Shown piece by piece: positions 32,664 to 37,930 of a stretch of 49,335 nucleotides of DNA; position 1 is the first letter of the stretch, and each line of letters begins with the position of its first letter. The notes beneath the pieces were generated by a model. It had not been told where the DNA came from. It ran no database searches and was given only the letters and a program-made list of their open reading frames with translations. Position numbers and translations under genes: made by a program. The stretch comes from Parasitella parasitica NRRL 2501 (taxonomy: Eukaryota > Fungi > Mucoromycota): NCBI GenBank assembly GCA_025201805.1, contig MU619327.1, positions 44,462 to 93,796 on the forward strand. The letters run 5' to 3'.

Positions 32664-32991
32664 ATGTCGAAAGCAGCAAAGGCCACCTTGACAGCATCCA
32701 TAGCATTTTGTTGTGCCTCAGTATTTGGGGTTCATTACTTTCAGAATGAAGAAAAAGAGGTGAATGTAGGCTCAATAAGTTGACAAAACGTATATTTAAA
32801 TTTCTTTGGCTGCAAATACACAGAATCTTAGAGCAGGTGTGCTGCGTGATGATGAACGACGAAAGAAAAAGCAGCAGCAATCGCTCAACATGAGAGAGTT
32901 GAAAGAACAACAGGAACTACACGAAGCACTGCTAAGGACACAAGAAGTGACGAATTTACCATCTAGCGAGTCTATATCGGATGAAGACTGA
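32664..32991 (+). CDS. PET117: Cytochrome c oxidase assembly factor Pet117 (2 exons)
   Basis: Exons 32664-32759 and 32824-32991 give MSKAAKATLTASIAFCCASVFGVHYFQNEEKENLRAGVLRDDERR...N..EL.EQ..L, the Pet117 pattern (VH..Q..E...L..GV.RD.ER). Confidence 0.92.
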
Positions 32992-33164: not shown

Positions 33165-33632
33165 TTAAGCACTTTCATCCTTCTGGAAGACATAGGTCAA
33201 ATGGCATTTACCACAGTATTGACGATCCTTGTGCTTGGCCATAAAGACACCAGCACCACAAGTGGCATTGGGGCATTCACGACGGAGACGAGTAATCTTA
33301 CCGGATTCATCGACCTTGTACATCTTCAAGATAGCCAACTTGACCTTGGTACGCTTGTGCTTGATCTTTTTGGGAGTAGTGTAAGTCTTCTTCTTTCTCT
33401 TCTTACCACCACCCAAGAGCTCAGCATTCAAGTTCAAGGTGTTGTTGTTGCCAATACCATAGGCAGAAAGCTCGCCATCGACAAGGGGCTTACCAGCAAA
33501 GGACAAGAGCTGGGCGTCGACAGGGAGACCTTCACGCTCTTGGATGATGGACTTGACAACAGCAACAGAGGAGCAGGAAGAGACATTGAGGGCAAGAGTG
33601 TTACCCTGGAGAGACTTGACAAAGACTTGCAT
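33165..33632 (-). CDS. RPS31: Ubiquitin-like domain - 40S ribosomal protein eS31 (S27a) fusion with a strongly divergent Ubl moiety
   Basis: C-terminal [18 protein letters not shown]...[33 protein letters not shown] is canonical eS31; the N-terminal 75 aa are ubiquitin-fold-like and end in LLGG. A probable 5'UTR intron lies at ~33701-33770. Confidence 0.95.
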
Positions 33633-33983: not shown

Positions 33984-35249
33984 ATGCCATCAGGTAAGCA
34001 GTAATTGGTACTAGCAAAGTCAAAAGAGCAGCAATGAACAGAATGCATGTGCCTATAGAATACGCGAGCAATGCACATCATAAAAGAGAGCAGACACCAA
34101 AAAGAAAGCGATCTAGAAGCAGAAGCGATGGCTTGGACGGCAAAGACGACCTTAATTATGTCGATGAGGATAGCGAGCTGTCTTCTGGCGATGACGCTTT
34201 GATTGCCAGTGATGTAGAAACTAATCACCACCACGAGTCATCAGGAGGGACGCAACATACTAGAAAGAGAGGCCGTCCAAAGACACACTCTACGAATGAG
34301 AGAGCAAGATCGCACGCAGCGACTCCTTCAGCAGCAGCATTAGCAGCAACATCCCAAAACTACATCCCACCTGCAAACCCCAGCGGCTACGTCAGTGATC
34401 ATGATGAATCTGGGGAAACAAAAGTGGACAAGTTTGGCAGACTGTTAGGAGGTATAGGCCTAGATCAGAGAATGGTTATTTATTGCTAAGACATTTCATC
34501 AAACAGGCCGTGAATACCGTGTTCCAACATTTACACTGCCAACAAGAGACAATACGCTATTCATGTTCTCAAAGGATCCTGCAGCTTTGCTAGGGTTCCG
34601 TGATAGCTTTGTGTTTCTCAAGAAAAACGTCAAGCTTATCAAAGTGCATATTGATAACGTCGAAAAAGGCTTTCTGGTTGATTCCAATATGCTGAGATCC
34701 ACCTTTCGTACTCGTGAAATTTCAGTCGTAACAGCCCGTTCCGTCTACAAACAATTTGGCCATCGCATTGTACGCAAAGGGCGTAAAGGCAGAGACGATT
34801 ACTACTACACGGAAGAAGTAGACGATGAAGAGGAATTGCAGTCTGAGGAAGAGCCCATCTCCAAGGAGTCGGCTGACAGACCTACACCATTACTGTCTTT
34901 GACTGAAATTGGAAGAAACAACCTAGCCCACAAACCAACAGCGCACGATGCAAACGTCACCCAGTTGAACTATCTACATAACGCTGCTGTTTCAGCAAGA
35001 CAGTTCAACACATCTTTATTTGCATATCGTCGTGCTAATCCGACCAACTACGACCTATTGACTAATGTCTATCAAATACCGGCAAATCGACAAACTCTTA
35101 GAGACACCGGTGTGATGATGCCAATAGAAAAGAAGGACGCAGCTACGACTGAAGAAAATACCCTCGAAAATGTTGGCAATAGTGGCTTGATGGATGTAGA
35201 CGCTATGTTTGGACAACATCATCAGTTGCTATCACAGCAACATGTATAG
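33984..35249 (+). CDS. Chromatin-remodelling complex subunit, Rsc7/Swp82 (Npl6)-like, with AT-hook
   Basis: Exon 1 MPS (33984-33993), intron to 34058, second intron about 34452-34506. D..GETKVDKFGRLLGGREYRVPTF...LFMFSKDPAALLGFRDS...VVTARSVYKQFGHRIVRKGR...DDYY matches the Rsc7/Swp82 domain; RKRGRPK AT-hook. Confidence 0.88.
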
Positions 35250-35306
35250 TTTTTTTTTTTTCTATTTTTATTAAAGCTTGGTGGTAATTCTAATGCATGC
35301 ATGTGT

Positions 35307-36131
35307 TTACAACCCTAATGTCTTTCTGGCATTTTCTTCCACGATTTGGTTGTAACGTTCGCGATCTGTTCTCCAAATTTTCTAAAGCACACTGTAAGAC
35401 TACATACTACAGATCAGATTATTCGAAATGAGCAACTTACGCAGGCATCGATATTTGCGCCGCTCTCGTCGTTTGGCTCTAAGTGTATGTATATACGCAA
35501 AATTTCACTCAATCAGTACTTGCGCTAGCACCCCATGCCGCTATCCCAATTTACCTGCCAACATGCTAACTACACTCAACAAGATCTTTTCAACGCTCTG
35601 AACAGGACTCCATCTTTCTGAACTACTTTCATACATATTGGGATCATCGCCAGGAGGATGCAAAATAGAGATACAGACAGTTCCATTCTGGTATACGTTG
35701 GGGTGAAAGAACTCGCAAGTGAATCGCATTGTAGGCGGGCTCAGTGGATAGTCTTTGGGAAAAGTAAGTGTGGCAGGGAACAGGCCTCCTTCGAAAGGGG
35801 TGCCTTCAGGTCCACTACCAAAGGGAAACCTTGATAAATATCAGCACAACAAAACTCGTTAGTGTCCCACTCACGCAATAAGGGCCTCCCATTCAAAGAA
35901 ATTGTTTTCGTCAACAGGACCTAAAGGAACATAAACTATTTTGGCCGATGGTTTGTCCAGAGCTAGCTACAAACCTGCAGTAATCCCCTCGGGTGCGTTC
36001 AACGTCAACTCTAAAATTTTCAAATGAATGCTTGGTTCTCACAAATATGATACTTTACTTGGATCAGTACCTCTATATTCCGTCATAAGGCGCTTCAAAG
36101 CCGTAGAGCCTGCATTTCTATTAGCATACAT
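35307..36131 (-). CDS. UBC7: Ubiquitin-conjugating enzyme E2 Ubc7/UBE2G2 (6 exons)
   Basis: Spliced [48 protein letters not shown]...[63 protein letters not shown]; the acidic loop insertion is typical of Ubc7. Confidence 0.96.
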
Positions 36132-37273
36132 TTTACTTTTGTACAGTGTGTCGCGTTGAAAAATAGAGAGATTAAAGAGGTGAAAAAGATGAAAAAGGCC
36201 ACAAGAATTTTCACCGGACTACGGCCAATATCGCAGTTCTCGGCTGATCTTGGTGGTATCCTATTAAACCCCATTTTTGCTCGTTATCGCGAATTGTGCG
36301 CCATAAATCAAATGACATGTCTGACATGCAAAAGATTAGTTTGCCAGCTCTCCTAGCCAAAGAAATCGGGAATTTGATGCATGATAGAGACGCAAGGGTA
36401 AATGCCCATTTAATACAGTTGGTAATCTATACTATGCATCTCAATACAAGGCTTCACTATGTATTTATACCGTCTTGCAAAACTTTGACATTATCGAGGA
36501 ATTAGCCCGCAATTTCGCTTGTAAAACAGGAGGGCAAGCAGGAACTTACTGCCGAGTGGTGCCATTACCTATCTATACACTCTATTCTTTTCTAGTAGGT
36601 AAATTACTAATTCAATTTATCAAATTTTAGGGGCACAATCTAGTCTCCACCGCTTTGCGAGGCTGTCTACAAGTTTAAACATTTCCCTTGTCCACTTAAT
36701 TATGTTAATAGAATCGTTGCCATTCTATGACCTAGCAACGCAACATTTCATCATTATTCAGTATAATAAAGAATTTCGATTGATCAAAAGAGCTTGTAGA
36801 TGACATCCAGATCACACTGTGCGGGACATTCTTCACCTTATTCTGAAACTTCAAGATTGCTATCAACTTAATACCAAGTGCGTTATACATATTTGTTGCG
36901 CTCTCTTTTTTTTTTTTTTTTTTTTCATATCTTGGCTGTGCCGTGCTTCGAGTTCACTATCTATATGAACTTCAATGGCAAAATTTTCTATGCAAGACTG
37001 ATGCTGTTGTTTGGGGTCAGCTTGAGCCTTATGTTTTCTTTTTTGCTCTAACATGGTGCATAAAGTCAACATCCACGGTTTCAAAACTGGGTTTTTTTTT
37101 CCCATTCTTTCCATGTAGGACAAGCCACTAGTATATGTTGCTCTTTTTGGAGTTAAAGAGGAGGGGAGGGTGGTTTAAAACTCTCATTATAGCTCCAAAA
37201 CTATTGACTTTTTTTTTTTTCGTTTTTTTCAAATTATTAACAAAAAAAAAAAATAAAGCAAAAACAAAAAGAA

Positions 37274-37930
37274 ATGGGAATCTTTGGTGGATCAAGCATT
37301 AATCAAGACACTGCAAGCACATTAGATGATGTTTATTCTCCATCTGCAAGCTTATCATCGGAAGAGAATTTTGGAGACAATAGCTATGAAAAAATCCCAG
37401 ATTTCATGGCAAGTGTCACTTATGATGCTAATCGACTCCAGCCTGCAGCATTGCAAGGCGGCCTCGATTTCTTACAAATTGAAGGAGAAGGAACAGGTAG
37501 CAGTATGGGCGGTGGGTCTCTTGCTCCCTCAAGAGGCTGGTCCGACGATTTATGTTATGGCACTGGCACAACCTATTTAGCTGGCCTGACACTGGGTGGC
37601 GCTTTTGGTATGGCAGAGGGATTGAAAAAGAGTGCTGGTGCTCCCAACATGAAGGTACGTCTCAACACAACGTTGAATTCTGTCACTCGTCGAGGCCCTG
37701 GTATTGGCAACTCTTTGGGTGTCATTGCAATGGTTTATAACGGTACAACCGCTTTGATCGATGCTCAACGTGGACAGCACGATGTCTTCAATAGTTTGGC
37801 TGGTGGTGCTATATCTGGAGCCATATTTAAATCAACTGCTGGCCCTCGCGCTGCCTTGGTTTCTGCTGGTGTCTGTGCCAGCGTCGCTGGTGCATGGTCT
37901 CTACTGGTATCCACTTTTAGCAGCAATTAA
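37274..37930 (+). CDS. TIM23: Mitochondrial inner-membrane translocase subunit Tim23
   Basis: PSRGWSDDLCYGTGTTYLAGL...LNSVTRRGPGIGNSLGV...RGQHDVFNSLAGGAISGAIFKST, Tim23 signatures; single exon. Confidence 0.96.
   Translation: MGIFGGSSINQDTASTLDDVYSPSASLSSEENFGDNSYEKIPDFMASVTYDANRLQPAALQGGLDFLQIEGEGTGSSMGGGSLAPSRGWSDDLCYGTGTTYLAGLTLGGAFGMAEGLKKSAGAPNMKVRLNTTLNSVTRRGPGIGNSLGVIAMVYNGTTALIDAQRGQHDVFNSLAGGAISGAIFKSTAGPRAALVSAGVCASVAGAWSLLVSTFSSN

Follow-up and report, generated by a model that had tools for sequence, protein, structure and literature searches.

A gene for ribosomal protein eS31 (S27a), located in a 49,335-nucleotide stretch of contig MU619327.1 of Parasitella parasitica NRRL 2501 (hereafter, the window), raises a question about the leader that precedes the ribosomal protein. 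In yeast Ubi3 and human RPS27A this leader is ubiquitin; here it has to be asked whether the leader is ubiquitin at all, how it came to differ and what it might do. An earlier note, made from the sequence, had described a divergent ubiquitin-like domain (Ubl), sharing about 39 of 76 positions with yeast ubiquitin and fused to a canonical eS31 within an intact ORF of ribosomal-protein-like codon bias.

The leader and the related genes of the genome

The gene, referred to as type A in order to distinguish it from a paralog, occupies positions 33165..33632 on the minus strand, with the ATG at 33632 and the TAA at 33165-33167. According to the ORF listing and to Pfam it is complete and intronless, and its 155 codons, followed by TAA, encode a protein of 155 aa, within which Pfam recognised a ubiquitin domain (PF00240) at residues 3-71, with 48.7 bits against a cut-off of 25.4, and a Ribosomal_S27 domain (PF01599) at residues 101-146, with 90.9 bits against a cut-off of 22.3. 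The Ubl moiety, on which the ubiquitin comparison, the AlphaFold2 and Foldseek analyses and the dN/dS estimates reported below were performed, covers residues 1-75 (33408..33632, minus strand) and ends in ELLGG. The eS31 part, identified by PF01599, covers residues 76-155 (33168..33407, minus strand) and includes the CxxxxC...CxxC zinc ribbon, whose four cysteines are present here and invariant across the alignment. It starts directly after ELLGG with the usual basic N-terminus: the succession of LLGG and GKKRKKK is conserved in the homologues, and GG is followed by G/A-KK in all of the aligned Ubl- and Ub-eS31 proteins (47/47). The codons of G74-G75 and G76 at the junction lie at 33405..33413 (minus strand), with the putative cleavage point between 33408 and 33407.

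As reference for the leader, the three-unit polyubiquitin gene of the same genome, found on contig C71, was used. The type A Ubl is identical to this ubiquitin at 38 of 75 positions (51%), with a one-residue deletion in the 52-55 loop. The alignment contains the substitutions R42L, I44S, H68N, V70N, R72E and R74L; lysines K6, K27 and K48 are kept, as is the terminal GG, while K11, K29, K33 and K63 are gone. The L8-I44-V70 hydrophobic patch, the LRLRGG tail and the set of seven lysines of ubiquitin are accordingly not found in the type A Ubl. Codon bias is strong, with an ENC of 37.9 against a median of 55.1 for the 8 long ORFs of the window, and codons ending in A amount to 7%, compared to 29% in the same 8 ORFs; the bias is equally strong in the Ubl and in the eS31 halves of the gene. 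The degree of identity, the individual substitutions, the lysines lost and retained, the conserved GG, the intact frame and the canonical eS31 part, as given in the earlier note, were thus all borne out. These data confirmed that the window gene encodes a ribosomal eS31 with a diverged leader of the ubiquitin family, and not ubiquitin proper. Type A appears to be a working eS31 gene, as its codon bias and the selection acting on it point to expression.

The whole 32.8-Mb assembly, consisting of 450 contigs, was surveyed for eS31 and ubiquitin by a six-frame Pfam search (PF01599, PF00240). The search for other eS31 copies, suggested in the earlier note, revealed two loci in addition to the window gene; the three loci include two intact genes and one pseudogene, every one of them is of the Ubl type, and no canonical Ub-eS31 was found by this search anywhere in the assembly. 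The PF00240 scan also failed to detect any free-standing copy of the Ubl in the genome. The second intact gene, type B, lies on the plus strand of contig C139 of this genome (locus L001:999-1727) and is interrupted by two introns (exons 999-1101, 1301-1653 and 1713-1727). Its Ubl, which likewise ends in ELLGG, is identical to the type A Ubl at 47 of 75 positions and differs at the other 28, while the eS31 parts of the two types have identical amino acids over aligned residues 76-150, with different C-terminal tails (DESA vs DQEA). The synonymous distance (dS) between the two copies is about 0.9; the type B gene is very close to the type B gene of Mucor lusitanicus, with a dS of about 0.16. The third locus, on the minus strand of contig C8 (L018:~1290-1720), is a type B pseudogene with in-frame TAA and TAG stops and a frameshift in the eS31 part; the first intron is absent, which raises the possibility of a processed copy.

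Canonical ubiquitin is encoded in the genome by polyubiquitin genes on contigs C71 and C53 and by Ub-eL40 genes on contigs C20 and C4, so that only the S27a-fused unit is divergent. Three further PF00240 matches, on contigs C63, C7 and C89, contain in the ORF listing neither an eS31 part nor a Ubl-type sequence. At the DNA level, the type A Ubl is 54-56% identical to the polyubiquitin repeats, the longest identical run being 11 nt, while the repeats are 94-96% identical among themselves; the Ubl therefore stands outside the concerted evolution which homogenises the true ubiquitin genes. Recent gene conversion of the Ubl from canonical ubiquitin was ruled out, as no tract of DNA identity with polyubiquitin is present.

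Distribution and origin in fungi

The exact type A protein is present in the public collection, within a 90% cluster of Mucorales proteins which includes Mucor circinelloides, M. lusitanicus, M. fragilis, M. ambiguus, M. saturninus, Parasitella, Thamnidium, Cokeromyces, Benjaminiella and others. By homology search and examination of the fetched sequences, Ubl-eS31 was found in each Mucorales genus sampled, usually in the form of two paralog types, and also in Umbelopsis, Calcarisporiella, Mortierellomycotina and several metagenome sequences; no canonical ubiquitin fused to eS31 was found among the Mucorales proteins fetched from this search. The ubiquitin fused to eS31 is canonical in Rhizophagus, chytrids and Dimargaris, within a thin sampling outside Mucoromycota. 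The leader described in the earlier note is indeed a real, selected ubiquitin-like domain, but it is not peculiar to this gene or genome, given the presence of the same state throughout the Mucorales sampled and in the other three groups.

Six derived residues are common to the five Ubl lineages: T7S, I13L, K33R, I44S/T, V70N/S and R74L. At residue 72 the lineages carry E, D or A, and at residue 14 mostly A; the tail reads ALLGG in Calcarisporiella and DLLGG in Mortierellomycotina. The alteration of the I44 patch and the ELLGG tail, first noticed in the window gene, are thus real and deeply conserved in the alignment. The simplest reading of the six shared derived residues is a single ancient origin, preceding the split between Mucoromycotina and Mortierellomycotina, and this pattern suggests that Ubl-eS31 is the ancestral state of the two groups.

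Several sequences depart from the common pattern. In the Ub-eS31 of Paraglomus (P0093, P0095) ubiquitin has diverged mildly to moderately, carrying V44, A70 and the tail RLLGG, and a metagenome Ub-eS31 (P0083) is canonical save for R74L; judging from their sequences, these units seem to represent early stages of the same escape, reached independently. In the Ubls of Choanephora, Rhizopus stolonifer, Blakeslea and Backusella (P0008, P0009, P0012, P0018), the first half is of type B and the second half of type A, which suggests gene conversion between the paralogs in some Mucorales. In a further metagenome sequence (P0073) the first 14 residues look canonical, the remainder of the unit being of the Ubl type. 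Within the Mortierellomycotina lineage, Podila verticillata and a metagenome relative (P0109, P0119) carry K48 -> Q and A46 -> N in the Ubl. K48, although kept in nearly all lineages, is therefore weakened as a candidate invariant functional lysine, and no argument is built on it here. Finally, the public gene models P0016, P0047 (Gilbertella), P0068 (Mucor lusitanicus) and P0030 either lack a stretch of ten residues after GG, so that they read GGDLH.PKK, or have an internal deletion; they look like the result of wrongly called introns and not like real variants.

Gene order was evaluated around the locus. In the window, an exon of PET117 (32806..32988, plus strand; PF15786, 33.4 bits) lies on one side of Ubl-eS31 and serves as synteny anchor. 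On the other side two ORFs (34034..35249, plus strand), the first of which has no Pfam match, occupy the place held in relatives by CRC_subunit, a chromatin-remodelling subunit, and are related to it by position only. The order CRC_subunit, Ubl-eS31, PET117 is found in Benjaminiella, Mycotypha, Backusella, M. circinelloides, M. lusitanicus, Parasitella and one metagenome contig; at the R. delemar locus CRC_subunit is present and no PET117 has been called. The shared order supports the orthology of the window gene with the Ubl-eS31 genes of the relatives. In Benjaminiella and in a metagenome contig, the second gene upstream of Ubl-eS31 encodes a ubiquitin-conjugating enzyme (UQ_con; L025:268-1148, L026:672-896), and no UQ_con was found as a long ORF at positions 35300-37200 of the window; its vicinity to Ubl-eS31 is probably coincidental. 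A 218-aa ORF at 37274-37930 (plus strand) of the window is rich in glycine and alanine.

Selection, fold and conserved surface

dN/dS values were calculated by the Nei-Gojobori method, separately for the Ubl and the eS31 parts. Within a close set, formed by this genome, M. circinelloides, M. lusitanicus and Parasitella, dN/dS of the Ubl ranges between 0.09 and 0.17, while that of eS31 is 0, with no amino-acid change relative to M. circinelloides, M. lusitanicus or Parasitella. When the three comparisons involving the window gene are summed, 19 nonsynonymous and 44 synonymous changes are counted in the Ubl, against 0 and 40 in eS31; the synonymous distance of type A to M. circinelloides and M. 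lusitanicus is 0.2-0.4. Judged by this distance and by that of type B to M. lusitanicus, the genome would most likely fall near the circinelloides group of Mucor. For distant Mucorales pairs, where dS is near saturation, the values are 0.10-0.41 for the Ubl and 0.02-0.06 for eS31. The Ubl is clearly under purifying selection, several-fold weaker than that acting on eS31, and in this respect it is unlike true ubiquitin. A neutral or pseudogene reading of the type A gene was ruled out by the low dN/dS together with the strong codon bias.

These values bear on the possibility, raised in the earlier note, that the window gene is a silent or neutrally evolving copy next to a canonical paralog. Such a silent or decaying duplicate would leave the work to a canonical Ub-eS31 located elsewhere, which is scarcely conceivable: apart from the fragmentation of the assembly into 450 contigs nothing speaks for it, while none of the three eS31 loci found by the genome-wide six-frame search carries canonical ubiquitin, nor does any fetched Mucorales protein, and the gene itself combines an intact frame, strong codon bias, low dN/dS (0.09-0.41 over all comparisons of the Ubl) and conserved synteny.

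The structure of the protein was predicted by AlphaFold2 from the 47-sequence alignment. Residues 1-70 were modelled with pLDDT values of 88-92, as a succession of strand, strand, helix and three strands, corresponding to a beta-grasp fold; confidence was low in the eS31 part, which is usual when a ribosomal protein is modelled outside the ribosome. In a Foldseek search with the Ubl model the best matches were all ubiquitin, with a TM score of 0.92 and an rmsd of 1.3 A to 1ubq. By sequence, too, the nearest solved chains are ubiquitin, and the N-terminus (MQ-FVK) is ubiquitin-like. The model thus predicts that the ubiquitin fold is retained in spite of the divergence.

Conservation is unevenly distributed over this fold. 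Positions kept as in ubiquitin include V5, K27, I30, G35, Q41, L43, G47, L50, L56, L67 and L69, which, from the known ubiquitin structure, we take to belong to the core and the glycine turns, and, on the surface, Q2, F4, L8, G10, T12, E34, K48, T66, L73 and GG, with K6 present in about 90% of the sequences. No sequence of the sample departs from GG or from the L73-L74 tail, and positions 44 (S/T/N) and 70 (N/S) are held to specific polar residues. Seventeen of the 76 positions vary freely (3, 9, 16, 18-20, 24, 25, 28, 31, 37, 39, 40, 51, 57, 62 and 65), and we assume from the known ubiquitin structure, not from computed solvent accessibility, that most of them belong to the helix face and the loops. 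The conserved surface would thus consist of the beta-sheet face and the tail, with the helix face free to vary.

USPs grip ubiquitin via its F4, I36 and I44 patches and by acidic contacts to R72 and R74 (PMC10611586). The conserved face of the Ubl is the same face, with a polar centre and with R72 and R74 gone. A tag required for its fold only would let positions 44, 70 and 72 vary, yet they are fixed, from which we infer one conserved partner on the beta-sheet face; most simply, this partner would be the protease which processes the precursor.

The same pattern is relevant to the view that the leader is a relic, drifting since recombination with polyubiquitin stopped, left with no more sequence than folding and cutting require, cut by generic deubiquitinating enzymes (DUBs) only and useful in the way any soluble tag would be. 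S27a-fused ubiquitin has diverged many times in eukaryotes and its divergence has been explained in such terms, by a lack of recombination with polyubiquitin (Catic and Ploegh 2005, as cited in PMC10457151). Drift would also agree with the lack of a gene-conversion tract shared with polyubiquitin and with the differences between the type A and type B Ubls, at 28 of 75 positions, next to eS31 parts identical over residues 76-150. Against it, dN/dS is 0.09-0.17 even between close species, far under 1, the exposed positions 7, 44, 70, 72 and 74 are restricted to certain residues throughout five lineages, in contrast to 17 further positions, for the most part exposed, which vary freely, and codon bias in the Ubl half equals that of the eS31 half. 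A mere relic is consequently considered unlikely.

On the other hand, polar residues at 44 and 70 and the retention of K48 are needless for a pure solubility tag, which leaves room for a separate function of the Ubl after its release. It might be a lineage-specific modifier, activated at its GG end by E1 and E2 enzymes, attached to targets and produced solely from the eS31 fusion. In favour of this, the GG end never varies, most lineages keep K6, K27 and K48, and the remodelled surface (polar 44, N70, E/D72, L74) is conserved across a clade of fungi of phylum level; moreover FUBI, a comparable Ubl fused to a ribosomal protein, has a few reported conjugates (PMC10611586). The genome, however, contains a single Uba1-type E1 with a full SCCH domain, and no second one was found in a search directed at E1s of the Uba1/Uba6 type. 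Residue R72 of ubiquitin is a main determinant for Uba1, and residue 72 of the Ubl is E, D or A instead of R. The evolutionary rate of the Ubl is several times that of eS31, with 17 of 76 positions unconstrained over one whole face, a pattern unlike that of modifiers which have to deal with many partners; K48 is lost in Podila, and the genome contains no free-standing copy of the Ubl. A Ubl-only profile was also compared with 1.84 billion representative sequences: the best 150 matches were all multi-repeat proteins of 326-2495 aa, evidently of polyubiquitin type and raised by summed repeats, which makes this comparison uninformative as to copies of the Ubl that are free-standing or fused to other proteins. 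Fast and one-sided conservation seems to fit a single partner better than a many-partner modifier, and such a modifier is, on balance, even less likely than a relic.

Proposed role and significance

The reading favoured here, and held to be probable though with reserve, is that the Ubl acts on eS31 in cis as a chaperone, is cleaved off and remains insulated from the ubiquitin system, its conserved face being there for the processing protease. The chaperone role, the cleavage, the type of protease and the insulation from E1, all of which we infer, may be set out as follows. In the ancestor of Mucoromycotina and Mortierellomycotina, the S27a-fused ubiquitin would have escaped homogenisation with the other ubiquitin genes and evolved from then on as a Ubl leader. 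Fused in cis, and by analogy with the known systems, the Ubl would help the production and folding of the very basic eS31, and it would be cut off after GG, before or during the assembly of the 40S subunit. The cut would presumably be made by a USP- or UCH-type protease reading Q2, F4, K6, S7, L8, T12, polar 44, G47, N70 and the xLLGG tail. Once released, the Ubl is expected to be poorly accepted by Uba1 and by ordinary ubiquitin receptors, since it lacks the I44/V70 hydrophobic patch as well as R72 and R74, and would for this reason stay out of the ubiquitin pool; free ubiquitin would be supplied by Ub-eL40 and polyubiquitin. Since the I44 patch, R72 and R74 are what ordinary DUBs depend on, the same losses count against a simple assignment of the processing enzyme.

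The better-known fusions provide the basis for this scheme. Cleavage after GG is known for yeast and human Ub-eS31; in yeast Ubi3, ubiquitin raises the production of eS31 in cis, the precursors are cleaved too fast to be seen, and uncleaved Ubi3 assembles poorly and causes initiation defects when present in 40S subunits (PMC8122580). In the yeast eL40 fusion, SUMO partly substitutes for ubiquitin (PMC8122580). The type A protein shares with yeast Ubi3 and human RPS27A the architecture, the junction in which GG is followed by GKKRKKK and the eS31 zinc ribbon, and presumably also the cis-chaperone role and the need for cleavage. It differs in a Ubl which is 51% identical to ubiquitin and devoid of the I44/V70 patch, R42, R72, R74 and four of the seven lysines; unlike the leader of Ubi3 and RPS27A, this Ubl cannot serve as a source of ubiquitin. 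The features preserved are those required for a role in cis, i.e. fold, solubility and GG junction, and those proper to the ubiquitin system are lost.

Alternatively, the Ubl could stay attached to eS31 in the mature 40S subunit, as in Giardia, where the uncleaved form occurs naturally (PMC8122580); the tail without R72 and R74, residues which ordinary DUBs contact, would be in keeping with this. In Giardia, however, the GG junction is interrupted by an alanine, while in every sequence of the present alignment GG is followed by G/A-KK, and the initiation defects of yeast 40S subunits containing uncleaved Ubi3 (PMC8122580) also speak against retention, which is regarded as very improbable.

Comparison with FUBI-eS30 (FAU) of holozoans revealed both likeness and differences. 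In both cases a Ubl leader ending in LGG precedes a small-subunit protein near the decoding centre. The USPs that remove FUBI, USP36 and USP16, are cross-reactive, and FUBI has a faster evolution than ubiquitin. Fusion to eS30 is a defining feature of FUBI (FAU), while the partner here is eS31. FUBI is also more distant from ubiquitin, with 36% identity (PMC10611586) against the 51% of the type A Ubl. At the equivalent of I44 it carries a hydrophobic residue, Leu 42 (PMC10611586), where the Mucoromycota Ubl has a polar residue 44, and it is devoid of the typical chain-forming lysines (PMC8122580), while the type A Ubl keeps K6, K27 and K48.

NEDD8/Rub1 provides a second comparison. Residue 72 of NEDD8 is not an arginine, which keeps NEDD8 off the ubiquitin E1, and the Mucoromycota Ubl has no arginine at this position either. 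The distance from ubiquitin is also similar, human NEDD8 being about 58% identical (quoted in PMC10457151). NEDD8/Rub1 differs in being encoded by a free-standing gene, in having its own E1 and E2 and in keeping the I44 patch, while the Ubl occurs only as eS31 fusion and has lost the patch.

The closest parallel is the class of divergent S27a-fused ubiquitins. The ubl-1 gene of C. elegans was described by Jones and Candido 1993 (as cited in PMC10457151 and its supplement, and in PMC6332867), and divergent S27a-fused ubiquitin was listed in 13 species, including Cryptococcus neoformans, apicomplexans, Giardia and trypanosomatids, by Catic and Ploegh 2005 (in the account given by the supplement of PMC10457151). 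The Giardia protein keeps the ubiquitin fold (Catic et al. 2007, cited in PMC10457151), and the divergent Ub-S27a of Plasmodium was analysed in 2023 (PMC10457151). The earlier premise that replacement of ubiquitin by a Ubl is exceptional was thus too strong, as one of the 13 species so reported, C. neoformans, is itself a fungus (PMC10457151, citing the 2005 survey). The Mucoromycota case resembles this class in that only the S27a-fused unit diverged, polyubiquitin and Ub-L40 being canonical, in that fold and GG are kept and in the escape from concerted evolution; it differs in its separate origin, in its extension over at least two subphyla, in the six common derived residues and in the presence of two old paralogs in Mucorales. 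It may be described as a further instance of the recurrent divergence of S27a-fused ubiquitin, distinctive for its depth and uniformity across a large clade and for the conserved, remodelled face.

A published description of the Ubl as the standard state in Mucorales was named in the earlier note as what could remove the novelty. No such paper was found in the literature searched, neither for Mucorales nor for the Ubl-eS31 state of Mucoromycota as a whole. A Pfam survey dropped the domains less than 80% identical to yeast ubiquitin (PMC8122580), and would therefore have missed the Mucoromycota Ubl. In databases, many of the proteins are named 'Ubiquitin-like domain-containing protein' and others 'Ubiquitin-40S ribosomal protein S27a'; the latter annotation overstates these Mucoromycota genes as a source of ubiquitin.

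Beyond the favoured reading, it is possible, though rather doubtful, that the released Ubl acts as a modifier or signal specific to the clade, or that it meets a protease which co-evolved with the surface formed by polar 44, N70, E72 and L74. If this were true, these fungi, agents of mucormycosis included, would have a ribosome-coupled Ubl pathway absent from animals and other fungi. Conjugates of the Ubl would be invisible to standard di-glycine proteomics, because the change of R74 to L leaves a long trypsin remnant.

The six derived residues may also represent a rare-change character uniting Mucoromycotina and Mortierellomycotina, with Rhizophagus canonical, although a reversal by gene conversion is possible; their pattern bears on the debated branching order of Mucoromycota. 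That a whole, old clade makes eS31 with a leader lacking ubiquitin identity supports the notion that the job of the leader is done in cis, and is not the supply of ubiquitin. Mucor lusitanicus and Rhizopus microsporus are tractable systems in which to address what is required of the leader, which protease removes it and why the remodelled beta-sheet face is conserved.
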